NCBI GenBank assembly: GCA_002811645.1
Contig: PDIP01000010.1
Span: 239,842-303,841, forward strand
DNA length: 64,000 nt
Direction of reading: 5' to 3'
From: Corallochytrium limacisporum Hawaii
Lineage: Eukaryota; Protista; Pluriformea
The position numbers and the translations under genes were made by a program. Of the stretch, positions 8,712 to 46,460 are shown in pieces (the stretch's first letter is position 1; each line of letters starts with the position of its first letter). The notes beneath the pieces are model-generated. The model worked only from the letters and a program-made list of their open reading frames with translations. It made no database searches and was not told where the DNA came from.

Positions 8712-9064
8712 ATGAGTTTTTGCGCAACCCACGCGAGACAGGGCGAATTTGAACCGGGCGACGATACTCTTCGGAGTCTTCGGCAAGACGCGGACCCTGA
8801 GGCAGACTATCGTACCCATACCATAGGACTCGAAATCCAAAGCTTTCCAAAGAATATTTTCTTGTACCACGTACTCAGAATGGGTCCCGTCCTGCATCAG
8901 AAAGGGAAACCAGATTGAAAACTTCTCCATAAGAGTTACCTGGGACCTCTTCGTGCACACGTTCGCTTGAAGCCCCAGTTTTCATTAATTTCCCGCTTGA
9001 AAATCTGACACGAATCTTCAGTGTTCCCGAAAGTTTCCCCCGGTTTCCCATAGTAGACCTATGA
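8712..9064 (+). pseudogene. Decayed ARF-like GTPase, ARL6/BBS3-like
   Basis: GEFEPGDDTL has P-loop spacing without K/T; TIGLEIQSFPKNIFLYHVLRMG resembles ARL6 [23 protein letters not shown]; after frameshifts IRVTWDLF, EAPVFI and ENLTRIFSVPESFPRFPIV follow in ARL order. Confidence 0.55.
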
Positions 9065-9176
9065 GGTGTCCGGGGTCATAGTGTTTACTCCCATCATTTG
9101 TGAACAGCTGTCGGTGATGGGATCCCCTCTTGGTATATAATAGTCGTTTGCACTGGGGATGGGAAGGCTAGGGCCG

Positions 9177-9700
9177 ATGAGCCCCTCCCACCGCCTCCCC
9201 TTCCTTGCGGGGTTGGGGAGAGACCCGCTCCAGCAACAGTCGATGTGCGGCCCCTCCTCACTCCCAAAGCTGTCCCCCTCGTATCATAGACTCACTATGA
9301 AACACTGTTTCTGGTCGAGAAGCAGAAGACCGACAAAACTGGGGAAATGAAAGCCCACCACCACAGCGGGGGTTTGTCGTTTGGGTTTGCGTAGGACAGG
9401 GTTTTGGGCGGGAGTCCAAATTTGGGAGTCCAATTAGAATATCTGCCCTAGAACCGCCATAGTCAGGAAGAGTGGACGCACCGTTATCGTTCTACGCCTC
9501 GGTGGAGAGATGAGGGCGACGCGAAACTAGGCCCCCGGAAGCGCCTCACGATGATTCGGGAACAGAGGATTTCAAAGATAAACCGAAAGTATATTGAATT
9601 TACGCCAACTTTGCACGTTCGGACTCTGGTGAATGTCGCCCCGTTGTGGTACTTTCAGTATAGCCGGGACTGGCGAAAAGCCAGTTTTGCCTCGCCACCC
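9177..9700 (+). pseudogene. Decayed radial spoke head RSPH9-like gene
   Basis: N-terminal SSLPKL...CFWSR resembles TSLML...VLFWGR; C-terminal DKPK / LHVRTLV / AGTGEKPVLP resemble DIPK / VVLRSLL / VGTGEKNMDLP, in shifting frames with the middle missing. Confidence 0.5.
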
Positions 9701-10022
9701 AATTGTTGTGATGGGGGAGCGGATAGCCATAGTCACAGATTCCTTCATGAATGAGAAGGGCTGGATTTGGAGACCGGTGGTGACGACGAGGAAAACGATA
9801 GCGGGTTGATGGACTAAGCCACAGTCGCACAGTGTTGCGAACGTATTGAATGTGGTGTTGCTGATGTGAAAACGGGATTGCCCATTACATCTCATACCGA
9901 GACGGCCTCAATAAGCTAAATAGCATCTTCTGCTTAGGGGTTGGTTGGAAAGCTTGGTGATCAATCAGATTAGAAATAGAGGAGTTGCTTCTCAGGTGCA
10001 GTAGTTCCGCAAATAATCAACT

Positions 10023-12281
10023 ATGTCGGGGAGTCTGTACCAGTTGAGTAGAACCCTCCAGGGACATGAACAGGATGTCCGATGCTGCTGTGGTAGTACA
10101 AGTGGCGACGTTGCCACCGGTTCACGGGATCAGTCTGTTCGCCTCTGGACCGCAAGTGATGGCAAGGAAGTCCGCAAACTGTCGCATCACCAAGGATTTG
10201 TATACAGTGTCTCTACCAGCGGGCCCGCTGACGAATATCCAAGTGGTGTCCTACTCACTACAGGCCAGGACAAACTCGGATATGTCTTTGACCTCTTTCA
10301 GGCAGATGAGAACCCTTTATTCGTATTAATCGGACATTCGGAAGCAGTGTGCAGTAGCGATGTGTATGTGGATCAAGGAACGGGCCAGGTAATGAGCGCC
10401 ACAGGGTCGTGGGATTGTTCTGCCAAAGTGTGGGATGGAGCAACTTGTATCGCCACGTTTGCGCACCAACTCAGTGTCTGGGATGTTTGCTTGATTCCTG
10501 CCAAAGATCACCCGTCAGGCGAACTGACCCTGCTCACGGCCTGTGCGGACAAAATGATCCGACGTTTTAGTGTAAAGGGTCAAACTTGTGTCCAGACCTA
10601 TGCACAACATGATGATGCTGTCCGCGGGCTTGTGCATGTGCCTGGTCTTGGCTTTGCAAGCTGCTCCAACGACGCAAAGATTGTGCTCTGGGCCCATGAC
10701 GGTGCTATTCTTAAGGAGTTCCATGGTCATACATCGTTCATCTACTCGATTGATTTACTCCCCGATGGTTTGCGCCTGGTAAGCGGTGGCGAAGACCGGA
10801 CCATGCGCCTGTGGGACATTGAGAGTGGCAACTGTACTCAAATCGTTCACGTACCCGCCGTGTCCGTATGGTGCGTGAGCGCACTGAAGAACGGAGACAT
10901 TGTCCAGGGTAGCAGCGACGGATTGGCGCGCATCTTCACCCAGGAGGCCAATCGAATCGCCCCTGCAGCAGAGCGGGAGACCTACGAAGCGAGTCTGAAG
11001 GCGCAGGAAATGACTCACAACGAATTTAATGATATTGACTTCAATTCCCTGCCCGGATTCGAAGCACTGAGCAAACCAGGAGAACGTGAGGGCCAGACCA
11101 AACTGATCAAGCAAGACGACAAAGTGGTTGCCTACCAATGGCTGGCCAGCCAGAAGACGTGGCAGGAAATGGGTCAGGTAGTGGACAGTGTCGGACAAAA
11201 GAAAAAGCAGCTATACAACGGTAAAGAATACGACTACGTTTTTGATGTGGACATTGGCCAGGGCCGGTTCGCGAAACTACCTGTGAACTCTGGTGAGGAT
11301 CCCTACAAAGCTGCAGAACGTTTCATTAAGGAACAAGGGCTAACTGAGGCGTATCTAGAACAGATCGTTGAATTCGTTAAGGAGAACGCCAAGGCCGCTG
11401 GCGGAGGACCAACAATCACACAAACGACTGCCGGATCGACACAAGCAAACCATACACCGCTGCCTCCGAAGAAAGATGCCCCAATTCCCAACATGACCTT
11501 CGTCAAGTTCTCCAAGGCAAACTTTGACGGCCTACTGAGCAAGTACCAGGAGTTGGAAGCAGGACAGGGTCCCTCAGACGCAAGCAAGCTTGTGAACAAT
11601 CTGATGGAAAGCTTCAAGGCCAAGTCTGTGACGGAGCGAGACTTCAGGGAAGGGTTTAAGAATGGTGTCATCCCCGTTCTCAAGTCGTGGCCAACGGACA
11701 AGCTCTTCCCAGTGATTGATTTCTTGCGGATTGCTTTACTCGAGGATGGTCTTTGCCTGACTGTCGCTGCATGTTTGACGGAAGACATTCTCACCGATCT
11801 GACTTCAGCACACATGTGCGCATCTAGCCCGACACCGCTGTTGCTATGTTTGTTGCGCATGCTTTGCAATCTGTCGGGAGTTCCCTTCGGCCGTAACCAA
11901 CTGCTTAAGTGCGGGGATGCGATACTGCCGTCAGTGGTCAGTCTAAACGAGCAAGACAATCGGAATCTTGCTCTTTCCAAGGTATCGCTGCTGCTGAACT
12001 ACTCTATCATGATCTACCTCCGTGATTTGTCTGGTCCGGTGATCACTAAGGCATGTGAGGACATGGTTACGCAACTCGTCGATCACATCAACAGGAACAT
12101 TGACGAAGAGGTGACCTATCGTGCAATGGTGACACTTGGACACATTGTCTTGGTCAACAGACCCCTCGGTCGGGCTAGTCGTGAGCAGGCTGTGGTCACT
12201 GGGCTTCGCAAACTGCAAGAAAATGGTCCTGCCCGGCTTGCGGAGTGTGCCTTTGTATTGGAGAAAGCAGTCAACCAGTAG
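10023..12281 (+). CDS. PLAA: Phospholipase A2-activating protein/Doa1/Ufd3 (WD40-PFU-PUL)
   Basis: WD40 repeats (GHEQDVR, GHTSFIYS), PFU motif YNGKEYDYVFDVDI, PUL motif WPTDKLFPVIDFLR. Confidence 0.95.
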   Translation: MSGSLYQLSRTLQGHEQDVRCCCGSTSGDVATGSRDQSVRLWTASDGKEVRKLSHHQGFVYSVSTSGPADEYPSGVLLTTGQDKLGYVFDLFQADENPLFVLIGHSEAVCSSDVYVDQGTGQVMSATGSWDCSAKVWDGATCIATFAHQLSVWDVCLIPAKDHPSGELTLLTACADKMIRRFSVKGQTCVQTYAQHDDAVRGLVHVPGLGFASCSNDAKIVLWAHDGAILKEFHGHTSFIYSIDLLPDGLRLVSGGEDRTMRLWDIESGNCTQIVHVPAVSVWCVSALKNGDIVQGSSDGLARIFTQEANRIAPAAERETYEASLKAQEMTHNEFNDIDFNSLPGFEALSKPGEREGQTKLIKQDDKVVAYQWLASQKTWQEMGQVVDSVGQKKKQLYNGKEYDYVFDVDIGQGRFAKLPVNSGEDPYKAAERFIKEQGLTEAYLEQIVEFVKENAKAAGGGPTITQTTAGSTQANHTPLPPKKDAPIPNMTFVKFSKANFDGLLSKYQELEAGQGPSDASKLVNNLMESFKAKSVTERDFREGFKNGVIPVLKSWPTDKLFPVIDFLRIALLEDGLCLTVAACLTEDILTDLTSAHMCASSPTPLLLCLLRMLCNLSGVPFGRNQLLKCGDAILPSVVSLNEQDNRNLALSKVSLLLNYSIMIYLRDLSGPVITKACEDMVTQLVDHINRNIDEEVTYRAMVTLGHIVLVNRPLGRASREQAVVTGLRKLQENGPARLAECAFVLEKAVNQ

Positions 12282-12415
12282 ATTTCTGATACGTGGCGAA
12301 ACTCAGGTGATGTATTGACCCTGAAACTTAGTACATTAGGACGAGTGTGCATGAGCACCAGAAACAGATCTTTAGCAAATACAGCCCCACGTTCACATGT
12401 GAGAACACAGCATAT

Positions 12416-12671
12416 TTATTCAGTGACGTCAGGCGTGTGCGTCTCCTCTCCATCGTAGAATGCGTTGCCCGACTTGGTACAAATGTCCAGAAGATGTTGA
12501 TGCTCGGCCTTCAGGTCCTCGTTTCCCCGTTCAATCTCGCGAATCCTTCTGTCCATGCTGCACATACTTTCTTTAGAGTATGCCTTCACCTCTTGCTCAA
12601 AGTCAGTGCCTTGTGTGGTGACATCCATGTCCTGTAGGCTCACTTTAACTTCATGCACAATTGTGAACACC
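12416..12671 (-). pseudogene. Possible decayed IFT20-like gene
   Basis: GVH[+1 frameshift]IVHEVKVSLQDMDVTTQGTDFEQEVKAY aligns without gaps to IFT20 [31 protein letters not shown]; shortened downstream. Confidence 0.45.
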
Positions 12672-12729
12672 AATCGGCCGCCCACAATGGCGAGTGTTTG
12701 GCCAGCTAAGCAAAATTGCTGAAGACCAA

Positions 12730-12784
12730 CAAAAAAAAAAAAAGAAGAAGGAGAAGGTTAGAAAAAAAGAAAAAAAAGCAAAAA
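12730..12784 (-). terminator. Oligo-T tracts downstream of tRNA-Ser (Pol III terminator)
   Basis: Several runs of four or more T on the minus strand beginning about 27 nt after the tRNA 3' end. Confidence 0.6.
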
Positions 12785-12810
12785 GAGCAAGTACACACTG
12801 TACTAAGGGA

Positions 12811-12938
12811 CGACAGCTGTGGGGTTTGAACCCACGCGGGCAAAGCCCATTGGATGACCTTTTAGTATCGCACCAGGCCAAAGGCCAAAGTGTGACAAAA
12901 ATTCAAGTCCAACCCCTTAACCACTCGGGCAAGCTAAT
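12811..12938 (-). tRNA. tRNA-Ser(UGA) with 46-nt intron (12856-12901) and mispaired acceptor positions 1-2
   Basis: D arm CCCGAGTGGTTAAGGG, anticodon stem TTGGA/TCCAA with loop CT-TGA-A, long variable arm GGGCTTTGCCC, T arm GTGGG-TTCAAAC-CCCAC, G73 discriminator, downstream oligo-T. Confidence 0.9.
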
Positions 12939-13216
12939 ACCGAGGGGCGAAAAATTAATATATGAACTACTGATAGATAAAAATATTCGCGCATGGCCGT
13001 ATGAGTATCCCGCCCACGAGGGGTTTGTGTCGCCGCTGGGAGGGCAAGTCAGTTTGGGACAGCCAGCCGCAGGACGGTCCAAGGACTGTTTCCGCTGTCC
13101 GTACTTTTTGGAACGGGGTTCTGGTGCTTAAATGATTGCAACTGCAGTGTTCAAGGCATTAGAAAAGTACTTACCATACGTACATTGTGAGGATTGATCC
13201 GGTTTTTAGAAAAGCG

Positions 13217-13573
13217 ATGGCAGAACCAGGAGTACAGCGGGTGGTGCGCTTCCTATCCAAATCCATAGAAAGCAAACCTCAGCTTGAGGCTACTACAAAT
13301 CGACTTTTGGCTCTGTTCAGCTCAGCAGCTGGGAAAGATGAGGCAAGGGACAGTACATTAGAACATGATATGGTAGATTACCACAGGCATCTGAAGGGAA
13401 ATACAGAGCACGCCCGTCTCTTGCGAACGTACTACATGCAGGATCTGATGAGTGAGAAAGAACGCACCGAAAAGGCAGCCCAGCGCGTGGGTCTGAATTT
13501 GCCAGTGACTCCGAATCTTCCGTTTGACTACGATACATCAGATGCGTCGGGCGGAGAATCAAAGAAGGAATAA
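13217..13573 (+). CDS. FMC1-like mitochondrial ATP synthase assembly factor
   Basis: 118 aa; EHARLLRTYY and ERTEKAAQRVGLNLP match the FMC1 C-terminal motif. Confidence 0.65.
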   Translation: MAEPGVQRVVRFLSKSIESKPQLEATTNRLLALFSSAAGKDEARDSTLEHDMVDYHRHLKGNTEHARLLRTYYMQDLMSEKERTEKAAQRVGLNLPVTPNLPFDYDTSDASGGESKKE

Positions 13574-13659
13574 ATGATCATCAGGATAAGAATTAAAGAA
13601 CACGTACCTTTCAAACTAATAAACAAGACTGTAAAATTTTGTAATCATCAATATAATGT

Positions 13660-15024: not shown

Positions 15025-15493
15025 TGTGGTGTATTCCTATCCTACGCTTTCAAGTCTTCCCTGTTCCTAATTGTGCCCAACCAACCGGTTCTCGCTGTAA
15101 CACCCTTATACACTCTCACCGCAGCATAACTGCTGCAAACCTTTCTGGAAAGTCAATCTAGGTCGACCGTCTGAAGTAACTCAAACTGATGTTCGGTCGT
15201 CACACTAAGAAGAAAGGAATGTGGCCGAAGTGACGCACTCCCAAACCTTACCCATCTCAACACGTAAACTCGACGTCAGAACCACCTCTGCCCCAGAAGA
15301 CTAGGAAGAAAAAGGAAACTCCCAGTTGGTCAACTCCCCGGGCTATGGCGACGAAGACTGGTGCGGAGTCGGGCGCGGTAGGGGTGTGGGTGGGGTGAAG
15401 GGAGACATGGGTGTTGCGTTGTTTGGTGTCCTCTCCCCCCTCCCCCCACCCTCCTCCACAAAGGAGCGAATGAGAAGACAGACTGCGGCAGGG

Positions 15494-16047
15494 GGTTTCC
15501 ACAAGTGGTTTCGCCCAATGGACACACACATTTTTTACCCGCACACACTTCCCGGCGAGTGTCTCAACCCATCCATCGCCTTTCTATAAGCTGCAGTGGG
15601 TGGAGAGAATGAGGCTGGAATCCTTCCCCTCCAACCGCCAACCCCCGGGGAAAGGTTCCAACCGCGACCGTTGATGATATGTACGCCAGGAGCAGGGGGG
15701 AGGAGAGAAAAAAATTTTCCAGTGGCACAGACACACATTCCCTGTATCCAATTGGGTCACTGGGGCCTGCCTTATTTATTCCCCCTTATCAATCTACAAT
15801 TTCAGTAGTGAATGTGTGTTGATCCCCGCGGTGTCATAGTAGCGAACAGCGTTACGCCGTGGCGCATATGCGAAGATCACTGCGATGATATGGACAGAGC
15901 AGTAACTCACTGATCGCTCGATGAATGTTTCCAACGGCTTCCCAAGAAAATGCTACAGTGACTACGTTTCGTGCGCTCGAGGTTGCAGTTAACTTTTCCA
16001 AGCCAAACCCGTAGACAATTGACCGTTTCTCTTGCACTCATTGTCAT
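15494..16047 (-). pseudogene. Decayed B9-domain ciliary transition-zone gene (B9D2/B9D1-like)
   Basis: GKFFSLLPPAPGVHIINGRGW...GGWRGRIPASF resembles B9D2 [21 protein letters not shown]...GSWREQLARAF; upstream *HRGDQHTFTT resembles WSHPIDLHFAT; stops and frameshifts throughout. Confidence 0.65.
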
Positions 16048-16435
16048 GACGCCGCGAGTGATTTACGTATATATCGGGTTCTCCTCGCTCGCTTCATGGT
16101 CGTAATTGGAGAGCCGCAACCACTTTCAACCCCTGACCACCCCTTGGTAGCTTTGCTCGGCGACATAATGCAGCGCATTGCTATTTCGAACATATAGACA
16201 GAGGCGCTTTCCCAACCGTTGCAAATTAGTAGTGGTGGCAGTTGCTCTAGTATTGGATCCTCAATCCCATCATATGGTCATTAGGGGATAACTTCACCAA
16301 AACCTTGGTGGAAAGGGGGCCGATTTTTTGGAGGGAAAATTTTGAACAAGCAAAGCTCAGGTAGAGCAGCGGTGGCCGGTCGATGTTGCATTGTCTCCGT
16401 CTATTCCAACTTGTACTACTAGTAATAATGATATG

Positions 16436-17867: not shown

Positions 17868-18872
17868 CTACACCAGGCCACCTTGTGAGATCTTGGAAGT
17901 GTACATGTTGAGGGCACGGGTGAGTTCCTCGTTCTCCTTCTTCAGAACATTTAGACGTTTCTGCAGTTCCTTGGACTGCTGCTTGGTAAGGTCGTAGTCA
18001 CGGAGTAGAGTGGCATTACCGACCAGACCATGTCTTGACTTCAGGGCTGTGGTTGAGTTGCGGAGGCGGTCCCGAGAACACTTGACACTGTTGACGGAGT
18101 CCGCTCCTCCAGCAGTTGACCCTCTACCAGGTTTAACTGTCGTCCCTTAGTGTAATTGTCCTGTTTTACGTGATGAAGTTTCTCTTTGATGTGGGTCAGA
18201 ATCTGTACATTCTGATGGATCTTCTTGCGCAGCTTACTGAGCTCTTCGTTACGTTCCCCAATCTTTTCGTTGTAGGTTTGGTTCTCAATCTTGAGCTGTT
18301 CAAAGTCAATAAGATGCAGGCCTTGCTCATCTCCTCGCTTTGCTTCAATTGAGTCTCGTACTCGTTCAGCGCACTGGTTAGGATGGCGTGCTGCAGGCTC
18401 CATTCCTTGACGGCTACGGCCTTCTCGTACTCGGCCGCGTTCATGGCACAGACCACCTTTAGTCCAATTGGTTTTCCATTCGCACTGCTAACCGACATTG
18501 CGCCAAACTCCTTGAGCCGTTGCTTGTATTCCACCTGGAGTTCTGCTATCACCTCTTGGGCCTGGTTCATGTTGCTACTGAAGCGAGACTTCTCCTGGGC
18601 GAGATCCACTCCAACTGAAGGTCTCCCGGCAGTGAGACACACACGCACATTCTGGGTGCCACAGCAGCCTTTCCCTCTTTGATCAACCGACACCTTGGGT
18701 CTCGTCCCTACCAGCTGAGTGAAGACTTCGTGACCCCACCGAACAAGTCGTCATCACCCCGAGTACCCCGGATCCGTTCCTCCCTTACCACACTATCAAT
18801 TTGCTTCCCCGATCGTTTGACGGAATTGGGTGGAAACCTGCGCTCGTACCCCCGGGAGCGTACCGCAGACAT
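17868..18872 (-). pseudogene. CCDC96: Frameshifted CCDC96/CFAP184 (DUF4201) flagellar gene
   Basis: GKPI...ETQLKQSEEMS [1-nt deletion near 18324] GLHLIDFEQLKIENQTYNEKIGERNEELSKLRKK...VQILTHIKEKL...R [1-nt deletion near 18100] DSVNSVKCSRDRLR...GLVGNATLLRDYD; TAG at 17868-17870; similarity recognisable up to about 18620, 5' boundary uncertain. Confidence 0.88.
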
Positions 18873-21004: not shown

Positions 21005-23892
21005 GTCTTCTGAAAGTCCTCTTTGTCTCCAGAATAGTAGATCGCTCGATAGACTTGTGTAAGATGAATCCCTTTGTCTTTCTACCTTTTTGTCTCACTC
21101 TCTGACGTACCTTCCTCGCTGATTCTTCTGGACATACAATATCAATGTTAGCGACCGCTTCAGGGATTCCAATTTCTCAGTGGTTGGCCTGAAACACCAT
21201 ATTCCGTTCATGAACCGACGACCAGTGACTAATGGATTGGTTGCCCAGACTTCAAACGAATTTCAGTGTGACTACGAGTAGCTCATGTGCGCATAGCTCA
21301 TTCACAAAGTGACTCGGCACCTGCGGTCAGACATGAAGGGGAGCGGCTCACGATGTTGTGAGGTTCTGGTGAACCTTCGCTGAAGGGATACCCGCCGTGT
21401 TTTGGCGGTTCGTGTGTGCGAACAAGTTTTCAGCCGCGATCATTGGCCGAAGGGTCGGTCAGTACCTAGATTGGAGTCTGATGTCCAGTTTGTGATCCAC
21501 CTCCACAGAAGCGCTTTATGATTCGGCCAAGTACGAACGCATAAAACGAACCCTTTCCCCCCTTCCACACCGTTAAACCCCCCCCCCCCTTACCTTGTTT
21601 TCTCCCCAACCGGCGTCAATCCTCCCCTTTTTCTTCCCGCTAATTCAGGAACGGACGGGCTAAACTTTCTTCTTGGCTGCCCCTACCTGGACGGAGGTGG
21701 AAAAAAAAATTGCGCCCCTCCCACCCCTCCCCTGTTTCTCGGGTGCGCGTGCGCCAAGAATCTCTCTTCGCGGCCGCAGCTGAGAGGTGCGCTTCTGGCA
21801 TCCCTGCCTGGGGTACAAAAGGTGCAGTGTCTGCCTCATCATCCGGAATCAGAGAGGTACGAACATTACTGGCGGCGCTGGTAGTGAGCGAGGGCGGAAG
21901 AATCAGTGTTTATTTCACTCGTTGTTGGTTGAATACTGCAAAGTAAAAGAAAAAACTGTTTTGGTCGAGTGGGTCACTTTCGTTCATCTCAAACTGTTCA
22001 AGACTGCGTGCTACCCTTGCCGTCCGTCTGTGTATCCTTTATAGATTTCTCTTTTGCAAGCACTCCGATCGCAAACCGATTATTTTCTGTGCCATGTCCT
22101 CAGTATCTATGGTGCGGTGGCCCAACACAACATTTCGTTCACCGCGGTCGCTGGCAACTGAAACCCCCCCAACCACGCAACCCAAACTGTCGCGTTTAGA
22201 ATGGGAAGGAGTTTGTTCGCTACCATCACCGGTGATCAGCAGTGCACACCAGGGCTATAAAATTCTGCGCAACAAATTCACCTGTATCACACCCACCTAG
22301 TAAGAGCAGAAACGAGGGGCTGCAGTGAACTCAAACCTTTTCGAGGAACATGGAAAGAACGCTCGGTTTCTTCCTCTGTACTTGCAGTACTGGGATCTCC
22401 ACTGCACTACTGGTCAGGTTGCTCGAGACTTATGGCTGAAGGGTGCAAGCCATGGGCTTCGGCGCTCATTAGCAGGCGAAGGAAACTTTGGCCCACCCCC
22501 CCCCCTCCTCTCCCCGCGCGCCCGTCCCCCCCCTTCTCCCCGGGGGCGGGGGTGGGGATGATTTGAGCTCGCGAGTTTTTGCAGACTGTCCGTTTTGAAC
22601 CGTTTCTTTTTGTCACACTCACAGAGCCAAACAAAAATTCTCTTGCACAACCGAAACAGCAAATTCCCAGTCGCTTTTCTAACTACCGTCGGTTTCACAC
22701 TGTCCGCGCTATGTTATGTGGCGCAGGTGTGCGGATTTCCCCCGCCCTTCCTTTCGGCCGGTAAGGTTCTTCTTTGTAGTGGACGTTTCAGACACATAAA
22801 CACCGAAGAAAACAAACGAAAGAGCATGTTCACAAAGAGCAGTAAACAGACCGACCCGATAACACCATGCACCGGCATTTCGTCAACACAGCGAAGCGAA
22901 AGGATCGGGGAAACTTTCTCTTTGTTTGTGCACATGCGCTCTCTCGTGGTTTGCCCGCCCGCTTAAGATCTTTGGTTTCGAATGTACTGTGTCTCTCCCC
23001 TCCCTTCTCGACCCTGAGTGTCAGTGAAAAGTACGGGCCAACGGGCCTTGCTCACTCCCCTGTCTCTCCACGCTGGCAAAGGGGGGGGGGAGGGGAGGCA
23101 GGGGCGGGGGCATATGTTTCCATGGGGGTAGGGGAATATTAAGAGGGGGGGGATGTATAGGAAATATTTGTCCCCCTCCCCCTTCCATTCACCCGGGTAC
23201 CGCCCTGTGCAGGGGGGGGGGGAAGTGGACAAAAGCTTTCAATTTCATTAGAGCACTGGCTCGCGATCCCCAACGACGACCTCAAGGTTCTATAGGAGAG
23301 CACAAATCACATTAGTTTCAGAACGCGGGCACGCGAATGTCCCTACGATTTCAGCATTGTCGGGGAAATAGAGAACAATATGCTTTGGATGCACGACAGG
23401 ATCATGAACAAAATGTGAGCGATCGGAGTCTGTAAGCTCTCGTCATATGCAAGTGGTTAAGTGTTTCTTAAGGCCCATGAAGAGAGTCAGTAACAAATCT
23501 GAGATCTTCCTTTAGGGGATGGACATCGATTTATCTTTAATAACAGTCGCCATTTTGAACATCCCTGCAAGAGAACGATGAGAAAGCGCCATGTCCCGTG
23601 GACACTGCGAGTGGGGCACACAGACTCACACATACCGCGCGAGAAAGAGAGACAGCAGGCAACGCGAACGGGCGACCGAATAGTGATGCTGTGCCCATCT
23701 CGTGCTATCCGTGCGCCTCCCATACCAGTTCTGGTCGTCAACCCATTTGATACGTGTTCAAATCAGAAGCCGCAGAGTAACGGGAATTAAGTGATAAAGA
23801 AGAATGAGAGCGACATGTAAAAGAAAGGGGATCCAGTTACCCCAGCAGCAGCAGCAGCAGCATACGATGCTGTCTTGCTGCGATGGCGTACC

Positions 23893-25050
23893 ATGCGGGG
23901 CCGGTTGTTCCATTTCCATTTCCCAGATGACAACGCCTTGATTAAATATGTCAATTCCAGCCCGATAAGCCTGCATCGGGAGGAGTTCTGTGACACAACA
24001 CCCAACAACACCAGACTGCCCATTGGGTAATGTCCCGTCGTCGTTTACGGAATGTCGTTTGTGCATGTGCGAGGATCCGTGCACGGTCCGTGCTTGGGGA
24101 GTAATCCTTCGAAGGAACGGGGCTCCCTGTAAATATTACGAAGACTCCCAAATTTCCTTCTCTTTGCGTCCCCCTTTCGGGGATCCGTTGGGGAATTCGC
24201 CGGGATGTTGCCGTTACAATGGGAGCGGTACACTTGCGCTGGGATTCTTTGGCGACGACGCCACATTGAACGGATCACATGCCAAAGCTGCGCATCTAAT
24301 TCAGGAGAGCAAAGAACAATTGTTTGGTGGTTCACCTACTGGTCACCTACTGGTGGAACACACAGGCAGACAGAAACCTAGGAGCGCACTGTCTTTAGAT
24401 GCGGGCAAGGCAGGCCTTTGGGGAGGACAAACCAAATTCCGCGGGTCGATCCAGTGGTTGGATCTTTGTATCTTTATGGCGGGACATGATCAGTAGACCA
24501 CCGGAGTCTCATAGAGGTTGGACCAATCCAAGAGCACTGTGAAACTGGTGGCTATAGGCAACTGATCAACTTGTCCGTACCATGCCCACTCGGGTCCCAT
24601 CCATCATCACCGCAGTCTCTCAATCCCCACCGCCACCTACCATGCACTGCCTGCACATCCTGGATTTGTGGTGATTACATCCCGACCAGGTCACCCTTAC
24701 CGGAAGAAGCATACCTTCTCCGCATTCCTATAGGAGAAACTCTGACGCACTGGATAATCAATCCAGTTCCCCGTCCACAAAAGAGAGCAGAGCTGGGGGC
24801 GCGCCCCTGTCGTTTTGTGTGCTGACCATGTGCACACAAGAACACATTGGAACACCAAAGGTAGCCCACCTTCACGTTAAAATCCCTCGGGATCTTGTGC
24901 TCAAGAGAATCACGTTCCTGTCAAAGACGACCGCCTTCCGTCTACACTGTGAGCATCTTCGGATCCCACAGGGTCTGCTTCGAGGTTGTGTTGTTTGTCT
25001 GGTGGAGAACAAGGCTCAGGAATTAATGCATGGTCATTTTGACCGATCAA
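23893..25050 (+). pseudogene. Decayed, truncated CFAP44/WDR52-like WD40 flagellar gene
   Basis: Collinear motifs HFPDDNAL, KYYE...SLRP, YNGSGTLA, DATL, KEQL...GHL, TGRQK, LWGGQTK, GSIQ...MAGHD, HSGPI, each matching the CFAP44 N-terminal propeller in order; 3' boundary uncertain. Confidence 0.65.
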
Positions 25051-25074
25051 ACACACTAATAGAAGCTGGCAGGA

Positions 25075-26465
25075 GTGGACATTCTACCCGTTGCGGAAAG
25101 AACCCGCTTCATTTGAGTGATGACTGTCTACCATATAGAACCCTGGTCTACGTCATTTCACAAGCCTTACGATTCAGCTGGCCCTTCATTTTCTTTGTCG
25201 GCCAATTGTTAATTGTTGCGCTTCGATGCTGGACAGCTACTGCATGTGGGCCGACAAAACACTTGGACTGGAGAGAGCGATAGACAAAGCCTGCGTATCA
25301 AAGTAACCACGCAGTCGCACCTCCAAATCAAATCCTCACCATCGAATATACAACCGTCCGCACATTGGGGCCCCTGGGGTCCCGGAGCCATCTCCCAATC
25401 ACTGCCCACAACTTCTTTATCCCCAACCCCAACTTCTCCCAGGCGGGGTGTCCCTAATCTCCCCAGGATGTTTCCCTCCCAACGACGAGCGAGGCGGGTT
25501 GGGAAATATGGGTCCCCTCTTCCCGCCTTGTCGTCGCCCTCTGCCAAACTGGGACAACCTGGTCTCCCCGCTCCCCCGTCCCCCGGCCGGGGGAGCGGGG
25601 GAACAAACCGCCGCAGGTGCGGCAAGTGTCCAAGTGGACAGTCTTGTCGCCAACAACAACATGCAGCCGGGTTTCACCAGACATCTGTATGGACAGAGAC
25701 ACCATCGAAGTCATCACCGTCTGTAGGAGAATGAAATGATCATCGTCTGAGCTAGCGATGTCCATCTACCGATCCATTCAAAAATTTATCGTCCACCATA
25801 CCGGGACTCACATCCCAGCAACAATGGCAACGTCTACGGAAAAGACATCATTCGGGGGCACCTCTGCCAAGCATCGTTAGATTATCCTCCACAAGAGGTG
25901 TTGATGGACCACTCCTGTGGGATGTCTAACGGACCACGAGATCTTCCTGTAGCAGATGCCAAATCGTTTTAGGTCAAACTCTCCCTCATCCGTGTCGCAT
26001 CTTCGTCGAGTAGGAAGGCAAGCAACTCCCGGCAGCATTGTCTTGCGCATGGCAGGCATCCTTCAGATGGGGAATAACATGCTTGAGGACTTCGATCCCC
26101 AAATTGGTTTGCGGATTAAAGCGGTGATGTCTCGTTCTGGTGACGATGTAATTGGGGTTCCCTCGGGGAGCAGGGAACGTCTCTCCTCGCCGAGGGAGGC
26201 AGCCGGGGAGAACGGAGAGACCGGGGGGGATTTGAGAAGGGGCCCATTTTCCCTTCATCCTCGACAAAAATATTAGACCCCCAATCACTATTCAATCCAT
26301 TAAATTGTGTTCATAGGGGATCAGGTTATGGTCTAAGTGTTTGGAGAGGGAGATGAAAAAAGGGGGAGGGGGCCCGAGTGCGAAGGTTTGCAATGGAGCA
26401 ACCGAAGAGGGGGGGGGTGGGGGCTACGGTGGTGGCGGCTCTGTTCGTCAACAACTTCCTTAGCG
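25075..26465 (-). pseudogene. BBS2: Decayed BBSome subunit BBS2
   Basis: Collinear motifs EVVDE, FGCSIAN, LNSD, RGPLDIP, VPPNDVFSVDV, VPVWWTINF, IQMSGE, GEDLIWRCD, KRNN, RVLYGR, VIT, broken by many stops, frameshifts and deletions. Confidence 0.72.
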
Positions 26466-28555: not shown

Positions 28556-29843
28556 GATTATGCAATTATATCTCTACAATGATTCCCGAGTATAACCAGT
28601 CATAAGAGTATATGGTTATCTGACATTATATACCAAGTGATCGTCCTCAAGTAACTTAAACTTGTATTATAACTCATAGTATTACACCGTAAACGGTTTT
28701 CACAGCTGCGGTCTGTTCTGGTTCTTGTTGATACCACGGGGTCGTCTTAAAGCGCTCCAAGAGCCCCAATCGCACAGTACTGTCGAAGCAGCTACTATGC
28801 ACGGTGAACAGGTGCCAGCTGTTCGAGGTGCAACTAGGGCGCAGCAGAGCGAGGCCAAACTGCACTTTACTGTGAGAGTGTTGCAAACATGGGTGGTTAA
28901 GCCGGAGCCCATCCTAGTCTCGTCGACACGGGTTTCCCATCCCTGTGGGCCATTCACTACCAGAAACTGCCACCTTCTCGTGGACCCCCAATACATTCGA
29001 TATGACACGGTTAGCAAGACCGTGTATTTACTATACAGGAAGGTAAACTACAGAGATTAATACTAAATGTATTGCGAACCACCTCTTTTGAGAACCTTCG
29101 TTTCCGGAAAATAAACTCTCCTCTCTTTCTACCAAATTTTTCATTGCAATTTTTTGTTGAATATTTTATGTGTGTTTTCCCTCGATGGCCATATTTCTTG
29201 TGTGTGCTTTCTCAGCTCCGTCGTCCAAGTATCCCCACTACCGCAAACGCCAGGAACCCCCTGGTTCCCATAGCCAATGTACAGGATTCACTCTCTCTCT
29301 ATGATTACAAATATATCATCATATTCTAGACATATTTGTTGATTTAAAATATACCCAAGGGCAAGAACTGCTCATTACTGTACACGGAGTTTTTTGACCT
29401 GCGGGTTTTTGCATTCCTAAGGTAATATGGGTAATACGCGCAAGCCTTTCAAGTACCAACGCGCATGTGTCGGTAAGAGTTGCCCCCATGGTACTTTCCG
29501 AGGATGGCAGGTGAGAGGAACCACATGCAGTAAGACGCTACGGAGTTTGCAGTACCGGGAAACCATCATGGTTTGTGGACCTTGAAACCACAACGGAGAG
29601 AGAAGCGTCCAAGTCACTTCGGGATAACGCCACCATGCGCGGTTGTTGGGGGACAGACAGATGGACCGCACAGACAGACAGACAGAGAGTATCGCATGAC
29701 CTTTTGATCGAAAAGAAGAAGAAGCCACAGACACAATGCTCTCTGCGGGGTGCGCAACCGGAACCGGAGAGGATCATGAGAGGCACAACGCCGTCGTGCG
29801 TACGGCATAGTGAGTTGTTGGTATGCTCCTGCTCTCCCGGTGG

Positions 29844-29845
<2 letters not shown>

Positions 29846-29909
<64 letters not shown>
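29846..29909. repeat. (AG)n microsatellite, about 32 units, with degenerate AG-rich flank to about 29990
   Basis: Direct inspection. Confidence 0.95.
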
Positions 29910-29910
<1 letters not shown>

Positions 29911-31947
29911 CAGAGCGAGACAGAGAGAGAGATAGAGAGAAACAGTAAGAGAGAGGGGGATAGTGAGGGAGAGAGAGAAGGAGAGAGAGTGCAGTGAGAC
30001 GCATGTGTTGTGTATGCGCGCGCTCCGGGCACAAGAGTCTGCCCGCGCGTGCACGATGAAAGCTGCGAAGGTAGACCATAAAAACACCCATTGTTTGACG
30101 AAGAAAAAACAACAACACGCAAAACTATTAGAAAGGCGGGCATGAGAGCGTGAGTACGAACCGGGATGCCCAAGTAGTCCGATCCTCCTCCCCCCCACCC
30201 CCCCCCACTTCAATTGGAGGGGTCGCTCTTTGTGTGTGTATTTTTGATTTAGATACTTGTGTGTTGTCGTAATTGCCGGCAGTGTATTTCTGGTTTATCG
30301 CGCGATCATCACCAACAATCCCCGAACACCCACCCCCGTGTCCTCTCCCCTACGCTTCATAATATCACTCTCGCTCACACACTCACACGCTGCTCCCGGC
30401 TCACGCACGGAACTAACGAGGTTCTTCCAGCAGGTCTGCTGTCCTGCTATCCCTTTTGCACACACCCACGCCCGGCATCGCCGACATAACCTTGGAACCA
30501 ACCCGCCGATCCTCTCCCACCGGGACTAACGCCAACCGCACGAACCGGAGACACATCACCTTGATGCGCGATCGACACTGGGGCCCTCGGCTCACACTGA
30601 TGATAAGCCGTGCCCAAAAGAAGGCACATCAATATCCAAGTGTGGTGTGCGCGAGCAACCATGCCTTCACATGTCCGGACGGGAAACACAAGGTGGGCCT
30701 ATACTGTCCCGCCTGTACCTCATATCTGCCTCTGTGTAGCTTCTGCTGCAAGGTGTCTCTGTATTCCTGGGCCGTGGTTGGCTTTTTTTGGTCCGTGGCT
30801 GTCGTTGTTGTCTTGCGAAACCGAACTTCGAGCAGATTCGAGAACCGAAACCCAATCCAAGGTCAGTATTTTCCTTTAGTCGTGACGGTATGTGTAAGAT
30901 GGTCTGTTCTTGCACCGCGGCTCCGAAAATCCTTTTTCAATATTTTCTCCAAGCATCCCCAACCCAACCTCCCCCAATTCCTTTTCCCGTCCCATCCACG
31001 TCGTTTTAGAGTTATATACGTCGTCAGGGTCAAAAAGTTGGCAGTGGCTGTCGACCCCGGGGAAAAGCGGTAGTTGAGCGGGAGAAGAAAAAGGAGAAGG
31101 GAGAAAGGGGGAGAGAGAGAGAGCGAAAAGAAGGGAGGGGGTGGGGTGGGCTTCAAATCCATTTTTTTTCCCTTTCCGTTTGCTCGACATTTGTCGCTAC
31201 ATTCATAAACGATGGGCTGGCTAACCTTTGTCGAGGGGAAGAGGAGAAGAAGCAAAAGAAAAAGAGAGAGAGAGACAAAAGGGGGATTGGGAGTTTTTGG
31301 GCTCGCGAGACTGGGCGTTGCTTTTGCGCTTTAAAGTTGCCAACAGAACCCGGGCGTGCCCTTTCTTAGATTCCATTTTCTCTCCCGGGAGCTTTTGTAC
31401 CTGCGTCCCGCTGCTTGCGGGGAGAATGGTTGGTCCCTAGGTCTCACTATTTTCTTTATTTTGCGTGTGTAGTACTTTGGGGGGAGGGGGGGGGAACAAA
31501 AACACCGCCGCCGCCCCTCGCTCCCCTCTCTCCCTGTGTCTCGCCCGGGCTTTTCCTTCTCGCCGCCGCCGACGAATCGCGGTTGAGGGAGGGGAGATTG
31601 GCTTGGACGGCAGTGGCCAGTCAGCAAGAGTCGAGGAGTGAGTGTGTTTGGAACAATCATTTGGTTACAGTTAGAGTGGTACTTATAGAGGCATTGATGA
31701 TCTATCAAATGCGTACTTGAGGCCCAAGTTTCTGTCAATGGAAAGATCCAAGTTGTAGATAAATAAGGACCTGTAAGAACAGTAGAATGCCTAGCATCTC
31801 CTTGGTCCGTGTCAGTAGGACTCAACAGCGCAACTCAACGGTCTATGAGGGATGAGGCAATGTTTAGACGGCGCAGTGCGCACCACCTAACAAAGCATAT
31901 AACAGGTGTGCGCTAGGGATCCCTAGGGATAGAGGCAAGCGAAAACC

Positions 31948-36955: not shown

Positions 36956-36986
36956 CACGCACGCACGCACGCACGCACGCACGCAC
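36956..36986. repeat. (GCAC)n tetranucleotide microsatellite
   Basis: cacgcacgcacgcacgcacgcacgcacgcac. Confidence 0.9.
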
Positions 36987-37364: not shown

Positions 37365-37412
37365 GGAGAGAGAGAGAGAGAGACCGAGACCGAGACCGAG
37401 AGCGAGAGAGCG
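37365..37412. repeat. (GA)n plus (GAGACC)n compound repeat in a low-complexity region next to the gap
   Basis: Direct inspection; a (CTCTGC)n tract also lies at about 37665-37705. Confidence 0.8.
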
Positions 37413-37816: not shown

Positions 37817-38043
37817 NNNNNNNNNNNNNNNNNNNNNNNNNNNNNNNNNNNNNNNNNNNNNNNNNNNNNNNNNNNNNNNNNNNNNNNNNNNNNNNNNNNN
37901 NNNNNNNNNNNNNNNNNNNNNNNNNNNNNNNNNNNNNNNNNNNNNNNNNNNNNNNNNNNNNNNNNNNNNNNNNNNNNNNNNNNNNNNNNNNNNNNNNNNN
38001 NNNNNNNNNNNNNNNNNNNNNNNNNNNNNNNNNNNNNNNNNNN
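37817..38043. other. Assembly gap (227 N)
   Basis: Run of N flanked by G-rich sequence. Confidence 1.
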
Positions 38044-40867: not shown

Positions 40868-40996
40868 GCCATAAGTCGCATGGGATCATATACATATGTA
40901 TATAAATGTATCATAGAATGTTATAGCTAGTCGGATCGTTGAGCAAGTTTGGTATTGACTGATAGGCCCTGCAATGGTGTTAGCCAGTGTCGTTCT

Positions 40997-42358
40997 TCAA
41001 ATGCCGGCAGGGATGACACCAGAGTCCCGGAGGCTTTGTAATTTAGCGGTATCATATCCGAGCAGTTCTCCAAGTACAGAGTCCGTGTGTTCACCCGCGG
41101 GCCCACCGGCAAAATTTGTGCGACCAGGGGTCGCCGTGAGCTTTGGGAGGATCGCGGGCAATGTGATCGGTACGTCCGGTCCGAGGTCCGAAGCTGTAGC
41201 GGTCTCAAACATTCCGCGGCTCTGGAACTGCTCGTCAGCGAGCATGTCCTTGGCATCGAGAATCGGACCTGCGGGCACAGAGACCGAGTCCAGCAGCGCC
41301 AATGCCTCAGCCCGAGTCATGGTTGCGGTCCACTCGCTAATCGTACCATCGAGCATTTCTTGCTGCTTCATCCGGCCACCGTTGTCCTGGAGCTCGGGAT
41401 CATTGGCCAAGTCCTCTCGTCCCATTAGGTTCATCAGTCGCTTGTAGATTGCATTTCCGTTTGCACCGATCACTATGTATGCATCCTTGCAAGGGTACGT
41501 GTTCGTGGGCACGATGCCCGTCACTGACGAGCCTGATGGCCCTCGCACGACTCCTGTCATGGCCGCCTCGGTAATCACTCCCTCCATCAAATTGAAAACC
41601 GATTCGTACAGTGCAACATCTACCACTTGATTCCTCGGTTTGGTGCCCCTGGCTTGCTGGCGAGCAAGCAGGGACAAGAGAACACCAATGACGCTGTGCA
41701 ACCCGCCGAGGGTGTCGCCAATCGACAGATTAGGTCGGACGGATGGGCGATCCGGGTACCCGTTGACATGACGAAATCCCCCGTACGCCTCGCAAACGCT
41801 TGCGTAGCCCGGAATCTTGGACCTCGGTCCAGTTTGGCCGTATCCAGAGACCCTACTGTAGATCAGGTCAGGGTTGATTGCATGCAGATCTTCCGGTCCG
41901 AGCCCCCATTCTTCCATCTTACCGGGTCTAAAGTTCTCAATCACTACATCGCATTTGGGAATCATTTCCCGAATGATGGAGGCTGCTTCCTCCTTGCGCA
42001 GATCGAGCCCGACAGACTTCTTGTTGCGACCGATGCTACGGTACCAGTATGACGTACCAGTCTCATCCATCAGACGCCAGGTGCGAATCTGATCGCCGCC
42101 TGGTGGTTCGACCTTGATTACCTCTGCTCCAAAGTAGGAGAGAACAGTGCCTCCAAACGGACCAGCAAGCAACTGGCCCATTTCTAAGACACGAATGCCA
42201 TCCAGCGGGGCCGGTTTGTTTTGTTGATCTTGCGGATTACTTTGTCGGCTATCAGTCGAAGGGTACGCGGTCGACATATGCCGAACAATGCTTGTACCAG
42301 CAGCAGCTCCTGCCACGGGGCGGTGAACCCTGAAAGCATGACGTACACTCATACTCAT
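40997..42358 (-). CDS. CoA-transferase family III (CaiB/BaiF; SUGCT-like), probably mitochondrial
   Basis: PLDGIRVLEMGQLLAGPF, GAEVIKVEPPGGD, RNKKSVGLDLR, DVVIENFRPG, SGYGQTGP. Confidence 0.93.
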   Translation of the reverse strand: MSMSVRHAFRVHRPVAGAAAGTSIVRHMSTAYPSTDSRQSNPQDQQNKPAPLDGIRVLEMGQLLAGPFGGTVLSYFGAEVIKVEPPGGDQIRTWRLMDETGTSYWYRSIGRNKKSVGLDLRKEEAASIIREMIPKCDVVIENFRPGKMEEWGLGPEDLHAINPDLIYSRVSGYGQTGPRSKIPGYASVCEAYGGFRHVNGYPDRPSVRPNLSIGDTLGGLHSVIGVLLSLLARQQARGTKPRNQVVDVALYESVFNLMEGVITEAAMTGVVRGPSGSSVTGIVPTNTYPCKDAYIVIGANGNAIYKRLMNLMGREDLANDPELQDNGGRMKQQEMLDGTISEWTATMTRAEALALLDSVSVPAGPILDAKDMLADEQFQSRGMFETATASDLGPDVPITLPAILPKLTATPGRTNFAGGPAGEHTDSVLGELLGYDTAKLQSLRDSGVIPAGI

Positions 42359-43408
42359 GGTCAATGATGATTTGCCCGCTCTTCTTTAAGTCAGAACAAT
42401 AGAAATTGTCCTATCTATGATCTGTTCTTTAAGCCGAGTCTCACCAGGGTTGGTTCCGAGGGATCCAAATACCCCTTAGAGCATTATAAGGAATACTCGC
42501 TCGACTGTATCAGCGATAGAACCTGAGTGAAATAGCTGGAGCATGGCAAAACACTTCAGCCAAAACCGTCAGCAATTTCACGTAAGGGTCAAGATGAGAG
42601 CAGGGAACATGGAAACTGTCCTATGTCTCACGATTGCCAGGTACACATCTTTTCCCGATCCACCTCTGAGTCCCCCAGCGGCGACACACTATCTCGCGAT
42701 CTCTTGACCCGTACGTCAGTCTGAGCTCAATTACACGACACTCGGCCAGTATGCAGCGGCGAGAACATCAAAGAACTCACACTTGGACCGACCTATGATT
42801 TCCTCCGAGTTTTTCCTTACCGTCCGTTGGGCTGACGGCTCTCCTTTCGGTTATGCGCGATTTCCTTCCCGCCCGCAATGAACTCACTCTGCGCAATCGG
42901 TCCAGGGTTGCTGACACAATGGCCCAGGAAGGCAGGAAAACACGGAGGAAAAGTAAAAAAAAAAAAAAAGAGGAAATGGTGGACAAGGAAGCGACAGTGA
43001 GCCAGGGGGCGGTGCTTATGCATAAATCCGCGGAGAAGGGGGGCGGGGGGAGAGGTGGTTCGATACCACTCTTGGCCGCCCCCAGAGAAAAGCCTTAATC
43101 CAAGGGGACGATAGCGTGTTCGGAAACTTACTGGACATAATAATGTACACACTTCCAAGAATCCCAAACGCGCACGGTCTCGTTTCTGGATTAGATCAGT
43201 GAAGGAATGTAAGTCTGCGACCACAGCAGGGTCAACAAACTGCGAGAGTCCCAGTGTCGAGTTGCGCACCTTATGAAAATACCTTGATTCTAACATTGAT
43301 AACAGTGAACAAAGAATTTCTATTTCTTGTTGCTGACGGCTCAATAATGGAAGGCGTGGTTGATTGCTCACACGCATACACCTCACAGAATCTTATGCAA
43401 TTCATTCA

Positions 43409-45868
43409 TTACTGTTGCTCCAACTGATCCTGCAACCGGATGTTCTGCAACAGCGTATCCTCCAAGATGCTCTGAAGCTTCTTGTTGACTTCAATGGCAA
43501 GCGGCAGTGACAGTCCAGTGTCGGGGTCCACCACTCCAGCTCCCATGTCCCCGTTGTTGGCCATTTCACTACTTGAGCCGCTCGGGCTGCCTCCACGGAA
43601 AAACATATTGCTAATGCCACCCATTAGAGAGTTGGCCGATTTGGCTTCGGCATGAGCAGCTGTCTTCTGCTGCCGCATTGCCGCCTTTCGTTTGATTTCG
43701 TCCATGCGAGACGGTCCCAGACTTCCGGTTTCCTCGCGGAGAATGTAGTCCATGAGCAGACGACTCTTGTTCTGCAGCTGCATGGTCAGATCGTCCACAT
43801 GTTCCCGATAGAATTTCACCATTTGGCGCAGTTTGGCTGGATCTGATGGCAACTTGGCGTGCTGCATGCTGCGAAGCTTGGCCGGATCGACTGGTCCCTT
43901 CAGCTTTAGGGTCGGGGATGGAGTCAGACCGCGGCTGTCATCACTTGCAGTGCCCGGAGGTACAGGAGCGCGGATGGTGGTCTGGCCCCCGGGTGCGGTT
44001 ACATTGCTCTCGACTTCAGCTTCCATGCTGTTCCTTTGTAGGGGTGTATCAGGCGGGGAGTCATTACCCATGGTGCTATCTACAGTCCGCACCGACAGAT
44101 TTGACGGACTGCGGCGGTGACCCTTATTGCCGCCAGTTCTATTGGTGGCAGCTGCAAGGTTCGCAGAGCCACCGCTGCTGCGCTTCTCATTACGTAGGAT
44201 TTCTTTCTTTAGATCCTTGACAATCTGCGCATGACGGCGTTCCATCGCGCGAATACTCGCGTGCTGCTTCTCAATAGTTGCTTTGTGTTCCTTGATCTTG
44301 GCTTCGAGGTCCTCATTGGTTGTTGACTTATCAGTAGCCCGGACCTCAGCTGTTTCGAGTTCATCGCGCAAATCTTTGAGCTGGTCCTGCAGCTCCTGCC
44401 GGGCGCGGGTGAGACTGGCAATTTCTCTTTCGCTCTTCATGGAGTCCATCCGTGCCTCACTAGCCTTCTTGCGCAACTCTGCAGATTCTGTTTCCGATCG
44501 TTGCAGTCGTTCCTGTAGTTCTGCTACCTCTGTCGCATGCCCTTGGTTGTCACGCTTACTTCGATGGAGTCGTTCCAGCTCCCGAACGGCCGCCACGACA
44601 TCCATAAGACCATTCTCGTCCGTGACATCATCGATGTTGGTCTTCGGGTACAGAGCAGTCAAAATAGATCGTTCACGCTGTCGGAAATCATTCAAGCGCT
44701 TTTTGGTACTGTTCACCTCGTTCACGGACTTCATCAGGGAGTCGTCTTTCTGTGCCAGTGTTTCCTTAAGATGATCCAGTTCCCGGGATAGCTCATTGCT
44801 CTCGGTGGCACTTTGGGTAGCTGCCTGCAGCTCCTTCTTTACCGCAAGGATTTCCTGGTCTTTTTTGTTTACACTGTTCTCAAAATCGAGAGCCTGTTCC
44901 TTGAAATCCTCAACCTGTTTGCGCCACCTGCCAATTTGGTTGTTCAAATTTTCGATTTCCTCGTTTTTTTCCTCCACTTCAGTCTGCAGGAATTCGTAGT
45001 CCTGACGACTTTCCTCCAATTCACTTCGCACCGTTTCAAGTTGTGTCTGGAGGCTGTTGATTTCATTTCGCTGGTGGCCAGAATCCTGGCTTTCCTTGTA
45101 CTGCAGGTCCCTGAGGGACTGCTGTGCCTCCCTCAAGGCATTTCTTAGCTCCCGTATCTCACCTTCGCGTTCCCTGACCTCCCCCGTGGATGACCTCTGT
45201 AATTCGATGAGTTCTCGCTTGAGTTTATTGCGCTCATCGATGATCTCTGTAATGTCCGCCACACTTCTCGTACCCTGATCACCATTTTGTTTGTCGACAG
45301 AGTCCGGAGTAATTGTTGAAGGAGTGCTTCCCAATCGCTTCAAAACATCGGATTTTTCTTTCTCTTCACGCAGTTCCGCGATTTTGCGTTGCAGGTCGTA
45401 TTCCAACTCATCATTCTTCGATTTGAGGTCCTTGATGCGGATCTTTAATTCTTCTTCCGATTTAACTAGCTTGGTACGTTCCTCTCCCATTAGTTGTACA
45501 GTGCTCTGTAGTCGATCTCGGTCCGCTTCCAGATCTCCTCGGATCCTTTGGACTTCTTTCGCCAAGAACTGGTTCTCTTCTGTTAGTTCATCGATCTTGG
45601 CTTGTAACTCTTTCGATCGTCCACCAACACCGAAACCAAACTTTTGGAACGTCGATGTGGGTGTAGAACCGCTGCGCGAGTGTCCCAGAGTCGGCGTCCC
45701 GGAGCCGGAGTCCCGCTTTGACTCCTCCAATTCTTTCTGCAATTTCTCTTTTTCCCGTTCCGCTTTGTGTCGCTCTTCTTCTAATTCATGCATACGTTTC
45801 TGTAGACGGGCAAACTCCTCCGGAGTGATTGCAGTGGCCGTGGCCTGCGACGCTTCGCCGTCTGACAT
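43409..45868 (-). CDS. GRIPAP1: GRIP1-associated protein 1 (GRASP-1)-like coiled-coil protein
   Basis: N-terminus ITPEEFARLQKRMHEL; C-terminus YILREETGSL and GLSLPLAIEVNKKLQSILEDTLLQNIRL match the GRIPAP1 termini; long coiled coil between. Confidence 0.8.
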   Translation of the reverse strand: MSDGEASQATATAITPEEFARLQKRMHELEEERHKAEREKEKLQKELEESKRDSGSGTPTLGHSRSGSTPTSTFQKFGFGVGGRSKELQAKIDELTEENQFLAKEVQRIRGDLEADRDRLQSTVQLMGEERTKLVKSEEELKIRIKDLKSKNDELEYDLQRKIAELREEKEKSDVLKRLGSTPSTITPDSVDKQNGDQGTRSVADITEIIDERNKLKRELIELQRSSTGEVREREGEIRELRNALREAQQSLRDLQYKESQDSGHQRNEINSLQTQLETVRSELEESRQDYEFLQTEVEEKNEEIENLNNQIGRWRKQVEDFKEQALDFENSVNKKDQEILAVKKELQAATQSATESNELSRELDHLKETLAQKDDSLMKSVNEVNSTKKRLNDFRQRERSILTALYPKTNIDDVTDENGLMDVVAAVRELERLHRSKRDNQGHATEVAELQERLQRSETESAELRKKASEARMDSMKSEREIASLTRARQELQDQLKDLRDELETAEVRATDKSTTNEDLEAKIKEHKATIEKQHASIRAMERRHAQIVKDLKKEILRNEKRSSGGSANLAAATNRTGGNKGHRRSPSNLSVRTVDSTMGNDSPPDTPLQRNSMEAEVESNVTAPGGQTTIRAPVPPGTASDDSRGLTPSPTLKLKGPVDPAKLRSMQHAKLPSDPAKLRQMVKFYREHVDDLTMQLQNKSRLLMDYILREETGSLGPSRMDEIKRKAAMRQQKTAAHAEAKSANSLMGGISNMFFRGGSPSGSSSEMANNGDMGAGVVDPDTGLSLPLAIEVNKKLQSILEDTLLQNIRLQDQLEQQ

Positions 45869-46109
45869 GACGGCTTAGATTTGAGCGTTTGCTTCTGCTT
45901 GGCTACGCAATGGTGTGAACCATACCATACACTGACTCCTTCCCTTGGAGTCTCCTAACAATACTCATGTCTGCGCCATGATGCTCTGCAGTTTCGCTCT
46001 GCAATATAGTTTTAATCGGATCAATCCTTACCTATCGAAAGTAAACCTTGCAAATTTATATCTTATACCATTGCAAACCCCGGTTTATCGGCTTAGAGCT
46101 GGCCAATAT

Positions 46110-46460
46110 TCTGTACTGTGGAAGCAAAGGAATGCCACTGAGTCGAACTCTCTCACCCTGTAGAGTTTGGCAACTGCCACATTTACGCAGTGTTCTACTC
46201 CGCGCTCTCTGAGGGTGCCCCGCCAGGCGAGTTTCCCGCAAGCCAAAGATAAAAGGCAAATGCAAAAACAAAGATGCCAACATGAGAAACACAAAGCGGT
46301 TTTCTTGCACCGGCAAACTCAAATTTTAGTTCCCGCAGGGCGTCGTGTTAAAACCGGTTTGTCCTATCAATTTCCAGCCGACCCGCTCCCCGTAACGATA
46401 CCAGCACACCGTCCAATAGGAAGCAGCAAGTGGCAGGGGAGGAGAAATATCTGGGAAACC
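46110..46460 (-). pseudogene. Possible decayed TMEM216/TMEM17-family (Transmemb_17) gene
   Basis: LPVQENRFVFLMLASLFL...GLRETRL then shifted GTLRERGVEHCVNVAV resembles LPYP...GIEVIRL...GNLCQRKMPLSISVAL. Confidence 0.35.

Follow-up and report, generated by a model that had tools for sequence, protein, structure and literature searches.

A lightly damaged CCDC96-family pseudogene and the broken cilium genes of Corallochytrium limacisporum point to a recent loss of the flagellum

The window analyzed here is a 64,000-nucleotide stretch (C11:239842-303841) of the Corallochytrium limacisporum Hawaii assembly, of which 24,109,830 bases in 286 contigs were searched. One of the proteins encoded in this assembly is identical to the EukProt entry Clim_evm3s227. 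It was counted as about 30 loci, and its housekeeping genes are open frames, as a first-pass annotation had stated. The same annotation had named eight decayed cilium genes in the spacers between them (BBS2, ARL6/BBS3, IFT20, a B9-domain gene, a TMEM216-like gene, RSPH9, CFAP44, and CCDC96). The CCDC96 relic alone was borne out; BBS2, ARL6, and B9 failed direct tests, and the TMEM216-like relic is borderline at best.

The spacer candidates were searched as pieces, neither joined nor read through stops, and the only match in a Pfam scan of approximately 50 stop-free spacer pieces was to PF13870, the family of CCDC113 and CCDC96. The matches lie on the minus strand at 18134-18361 and 17910-18101 in two different frames, both above the cut-off (E values of 1.4e-18 and 1.3e-8), and PF13870 has no match elsewhere in the assembly, which makes the gene single copy as far as this incomplete assembly goes and leaves no other copy as an intact paralogue. 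A frameshift-aware alignment to homologues gives 42% identity across 236 to 266 amino acids (aa), the flanking parts have scores of 116 and 352 where shuffles average 30 to 32, and the three-base periodicity of the locus has a z of 9.1. Relatives of this piece number 1,027 among 1.8 billion representatives. In the assembly sequence the gene carries one-base deletions near 18326 and 18102, each a −1 shift, and zero in-frame stops. No slippery heptamer stands beside either frameshift, and an intron was ruled out as the cause of the breaks, there being no extra sequence to splice at a one-base deficit. The gene is presumably CCDC96 rather than CCDC113; the Pfam family covers both, and the homologues are unnamed. 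Unitary pseudogenes are genes that existed as one copy and were inactivated where they stand, so that no working paralogue is left, and the CCDC96-family locus is, at least in this assembly, a lightly damaged example.

About a dozen ciliary families were followed through the whole assembly, with absences resting on six-frame searches. The dynein heavy-chain domain AAA_6 has one match, within a 4,907-aa open frame that we read as cytoplasmic dynein, and there is no second or broken one; the assembly thus holds no axonemal dynein heavy chain. Of the 45 matches to the Arf model, the top eight are non-ciliary genes, all of them intact. ARL13B is interrupted by in-frame stops (TAA and TGA), and ARL6, on contig C243, has lost approximately 40 codons from the P-loop to the switch region and has a frameshift. 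B9D1, on C282, contains one stop, and B9D2, on C70, contains two stops and a frame change. The two stops of B9D2 are TAG codons that stand where tryptophan is presumed; editing alone would not repair the gene because the frame change follows them. The lesions are of mixed types: stops of all three kinds occur beside frameshifts and one large deletion. As ways of restoring these genes in general, introns, slippery sites, and uniform editing were all rejected. BBS2 was undetected genome-wide, IFT20 was not found elsewhere in the assembly, and ARL3 was not seen among the Arf-model matches. Among other GTPases, an ARF6-like gene (G000:C47:57777-61109) has at least three GT-AG introns, and the genes of the window appear intronless. 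A small-GTPase match at G000:C179:28131-28322 (minus strand) has one TAA stop and is perhaps another ciliary GTPase relic.

Other cilium-related genes are open. Two subunits of the A complex of intraflagellar transport (IFT-A) are intact, namely, an IFT140-like gene (1,240 aa open; E value of 5.5e-11 to human IFT140) and IFT144/WDR19 (a 1,858-aa open frame; E value of 8.8e-97), the latter well conserved and longer than usual; the search that identified them returned no match to IFT172. The IFT140-like gene, at G000:C25:22844-26647, is open yet very divergent. Five tubulin genes and a 141-aa TMEM216-family gene (on C259) are likewise intact, and centrioles have been observed by transmission electron microscopy in C. 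limacisporum (PMC11153136). The frames of the centriole genes, of two or more IFT-A subunits, and of a TMEM216-family gene are thus still open, which suggests that these genes have jobs outside the cilium. The first-pass statement that no intact cilium gene is present accordingly holds for the window but not for the genome, where the IFT140-like, IFT144, and TMEM216-family genes are whole.

Of the remaining places (Table 1), those of BBS2, ARL6, B9, and TMEM216 were scored against shuffle controls, and all were put through an identity-free test for three-base coding periodicity whose z values are uncorrected across 18 tests. Four relics verified elsewhere in the assembly have z values of 2.3 to 4.9, and control spacers have values of about zero; at the ARL6, B9, BBS2, and TMEM216 places z runs from −2.3 to 0.6, whichever strand is read. 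A tblastn comparison of 894 control open reading frames (ORFs) with the spacers gave zero matches, forward or reversed. A PDB search with six spacer pieces found none of the claimed families, and the CFAP263 match of one piece (E value of 0.28) is at chance level.

Table 1. Features proposed or verified in the window, in order of position
Feature	Position in window	Strand	Outcome
Claimed ARL6 relic	8712..9064	+	Unsupported; true orthologue relic on contig C243
Claimed RSPH9 relic	9177..9700	+	Periodicity z 2.1; PDB blank
70-aa coiled-coil-like ORF, annotated as IFT20	12416..12628	−	Open frame reaches up to 12757
Claimed B9-domain relic	15494..16047		Unsupported; B9D1 and B9D2 relics on C282 and C70
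Broken CCDC96-family gene (PF13870)	17877..18597	−	C-terminal ~240 codons; N-terminal part not alignable
Claimed CFAP44 relic	23893..25050	+	Periodicity z 1.8; no database match
Claimed BBS2 relic	25075..26465	−	At shuffle level; periodicity z 0.0
Claimed TMEM216-like relic	46110..46460	−	1/60 shuffles, with lenient penalties only; periodicity z −0.3

For BBS2, full-length references were recovered from metagenomes via a degenerate pattern, all BBS2 domains were confirmed in them, and a profile was built from 338 pieces. In the window its best six-frame domain scores 1.9 bits, against 4.3 bits in reversed DNA. The claimed place scores 55.5 against shuffles of 45.6 ± 6.6, and 61.4 against 53.9 ± 8.2 in a later test, and it has no collinear match to the BBS2 N, Mid, GAE, platform, or hairpin domains. 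A held-out BBS2 decayed in silico still scores above 1,000 at 5% substitution and 163 to 250 at 30%, and it sinks into noise near approximately 40%. Simulated relics with as much as about 30% decay are thus within reach of this profile, and the claimed relic does not rise above its shuffles.

The ARL6 and B9 places fared similarly. The first gives, as its best result against a generic ARF profile, 4/100 shuffles, and it has neither an ARF motif nor similarity to the organism's own ARL6. The second matches neither PF07162 nor the organism's B9D1 and B9D2. A weak B9-like trace at 42400-42800 (minus strand), where the first-pass annotation had placed a CFAP126-like gene, reached 1/60 shuffles against both B9D1 and B9D2; it was rejected as expected by chance among that many tests, the shuffle comparisons with the organism's own relics and profiles numbering about 36 in total. 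The TMEM216-like relic is borderline at best: its place is blank in Pfam (TMEM17/TMEM216 family, PF09799) and in the Atlas, though it may hold an old TMEM17 trace. The assembly has a gap (a run of N) at 37817-38043, within simple, purine-rich sequence; the housekeeping genes on its two sides we take to be a NAD-kinase-like gene and a tRNA-synthetase-like gene. No claimed relic spans the gap, and only the adjacency of the TMEM216 place to the rest of the window depends on it.

The IFT20 place differs from these in being gene-like. Its 70-aa ORF is listed as a protein in EukProt, and the interval 12416-12671 (minus strand) has a periodicity z of 4.2. Searches of Pfam, PDB, a set of 5.8 billion sequences, and the Atlas yielded no IFT20 and no homologue, and neither PF14931 nor the solved IFT20 chains match the ORF. 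It can be threaded onto what we take to be the IFT20 sequence if two in-frame deletions and loss of the tail are allowed. The ORF would be either a small gene still in use or an IFT20 damaged by deletions; the IFT20 identity is a lead, with odds near even. The RSPH9 and CFAP44 relics are unproven. What is presumably an RSPH9 C-terminal motif lies near 9590-9690 and is suggestive only. Word-index searches with CFAP44 and IFT20 pieces returned nothing, and degenerate patterns from motifs of ARL6, IFT20, RSPH9, and CFAP44 retrieved no reference in viral and prokaryotic collections.

Had all eight relics been real among about 30 loci, the binomial p would be 2e-6 to 8e-5 under our assumption that 3 to 5% of genes are ciliary. 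With one or two relics p is 0.2 to 0.8, and the proposed ancestral clustering of cilium genes falls away. Apart from CCDC96 and perhaps IFT20, the calls most likely arose from patterns matched by eye in spacers that are otherwise ordinary; by-eye relic calling had a high false rate in this window and should be treated with caution.

Taken with the broken and missing genes on other contigs, the CCDC96-family pseudogene makes it probable that C. limacisporum lost its flagellum recently and that its axoneme-only genes have since decayed or been deleted. Once a flagellated stage had ceased, the genes of the axoneme, of the B complex of intraflagellar transport (IFT-B), of the BBSome, and of part of the transition zone would have drifted neutrally, some coming to carry one to few stops, frameshifts, or deletions and others being deleted outright, which would fit the compactness of the genome. 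Genes that also serve another purpose, those for centriole parts and apparently IFT-A among them, would have been retained. The window would then hold one such single-copy pseudogene, of the CCDC96 family, and perhaps a second, the IFT20-like ORF. The loss would be recent because the genes that can still be read carry few lesions. The first-pass annotation had drawn the same inference from its list of relics; it stands through one gene of the window and genes on other contigs, but not through that list. Several points weigh against this reading. The set of families tested genome-wide is narrow, and the absences are soft, the assembly being approximately 83% complete by BUSCO (PMC5560861). Neither PF04712 (RSPH9) nor PF25828 (CFAP44) has a match anywhere in the assembly, and these negatives carry no evidential weight either way. 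Finally, the IFT20, RSPH9, and CFAP44 places were judged from coding periodicity and database searches, and the motifs recognized for RSPH9 and IFT20 are suggestive.

We more tentatively consider that in this free-living, single-celled relative of animals the axoneme, IFT-B, and BBSome were dismantled only recently while selection maintains the IFT-A subunits and the TMEM216-family protein in a role independent of the cilium, such as that of a vesicle coat or one at the centriole; we would put this a little short of an even chance. C. limacisporum can be transfected, according to a preprint that makes no mention of a flagellum (10.1101/2020.11.12.379420).

A staggered loss, in which the other claimed relics are real but older, past statistical detection, and part of an ancestral ciliary cluster, is unlikely. 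RSPH9 and CFAP44 do have weak periodicity on the claimed strand (z of about 2), a GAE-like stretch at 26191-25951 is the top match for one BBS2 reference (51 against controls of 41 to 45), and none of BBS2, IFT20, RSPH9, and CFAP44 was found elsewhere. However, BBS2 would need approximately 40% neutral decay to escape its profile while BBS3/ARL6, of the same module, has barely decayed, and extra copies would be required of ARL6, B9D1, B9D2, and TMEM216, which are already present on other contigs. The same proteins could also be fitted by eye to other places and strands of the window.

Less probable still is a loss confined to the sequenced culture or population, with wild relatives that flagellate, as in strains of Emiliania huxleyi (PMC4438323). 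The very light decay and this strain-level precedent are in its favor, but so many lesions, independent of one another and fixed, together with the loss of whole genes, would take far more time than a culture exists. In addition, the strains from Hawaii and India are said to be nearly identical (10.1101/2020.11.12.379420), and two samples from 2015 have similar word shares, 0.38 and 0.33.

Torruella et al. reportedly predicted a cryptic flagellated stage for C. limacisporum in 2015. Such a stage, predicted from gene content, is still cited in later papers (PMC7147346, PMC12731214). Recoding of the lesions is unlikely because their types are mixed and the motors are missing. That the published stage is real, with the breaks repaired by RNA editing or frameshifting in a rare stage or introduced by assembly errors, is the most improbable reading: both CCDC96 lesions are −1 and both B9D2 stops are TAG where tryptophan is presumed, but there is no axonemal dynein heavy chain to edit, ARL6 has lost some 40 codons, the ARL13B stops are TAA and TGA, slippery sites are absent, and the control GTPases and the housekeeping genes of the window are unbroken. 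The evidence thus argues against the cryptic stage. Our data agree with that prediction in organism and in the presence of detectable ciliary homologues, but those tested are mostly broken or absent, which speaks for loss.

The recent loss favored here has a known counterpart. Flagellar pseudogene "fossils" have been described in E. huxleyi CCMP1516 and EH2, where, as in Corallochytrium, flagellar genes are broken or deleted, no complete axonemal dynein remains, and recent loss was read from the remnants (PMC4438323). In E. huxleyi the loss is at the level of strains, with intact sister strains, and involves even a cytoplasmic-type dynein, whereas in Corallochytrium, an opisthokont, one dynein is intact, centrioles and IFT-A genes are retained, and no intact relative strain is known. 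What sets this case apart from ordinary unitary pseudogenes is that the gene set of a whole organelle is hit, one transport module having apparently escaped. Fossil genes left behind by the loss of a flagellum are known already; for Corallochytrium, of whose flagellar fossils we found no report in the literature, they contradict a standing inference. The cryptic-stage inference feeds reconstructions of the animal ancestor and would be wrong if the toolkit is pseudogenized, in which case homology-based presence calls need a frame check. The warning in the first-pass annotation that homology surveys may mistake flagellar relics for a cryptic stage is supported in that most of the genes tested here carry breaks or are missing. 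From the order in which genes were lost, and from the IFT-A genes that were spared, one would learn which ciliary parts have other jobs.

Other features of the window were noted in passing. Purine tracts and microsatellites abound in two long spacers, at 21005-23890 and 28560-31947, which lie upstream of a PAS gene and a membrane kinase and have no coding signal in the parts tested. A tRNA with a UGA anticodon at 12811-12938 (minus strand; Rfam, 30.9 bits; missed by ARAGORN) has a 48-nucleotide insert after the anticodon and mismatches in the outer acceptor pairs, and it is intron bearing, edited, or a pseudogene. At 58886-59221 (plus strand), a 111-aa protein with no Pfam family above the cut-off consists of two near-identical halves; it is listed in EukProt and has a periodicity z of 5.3.

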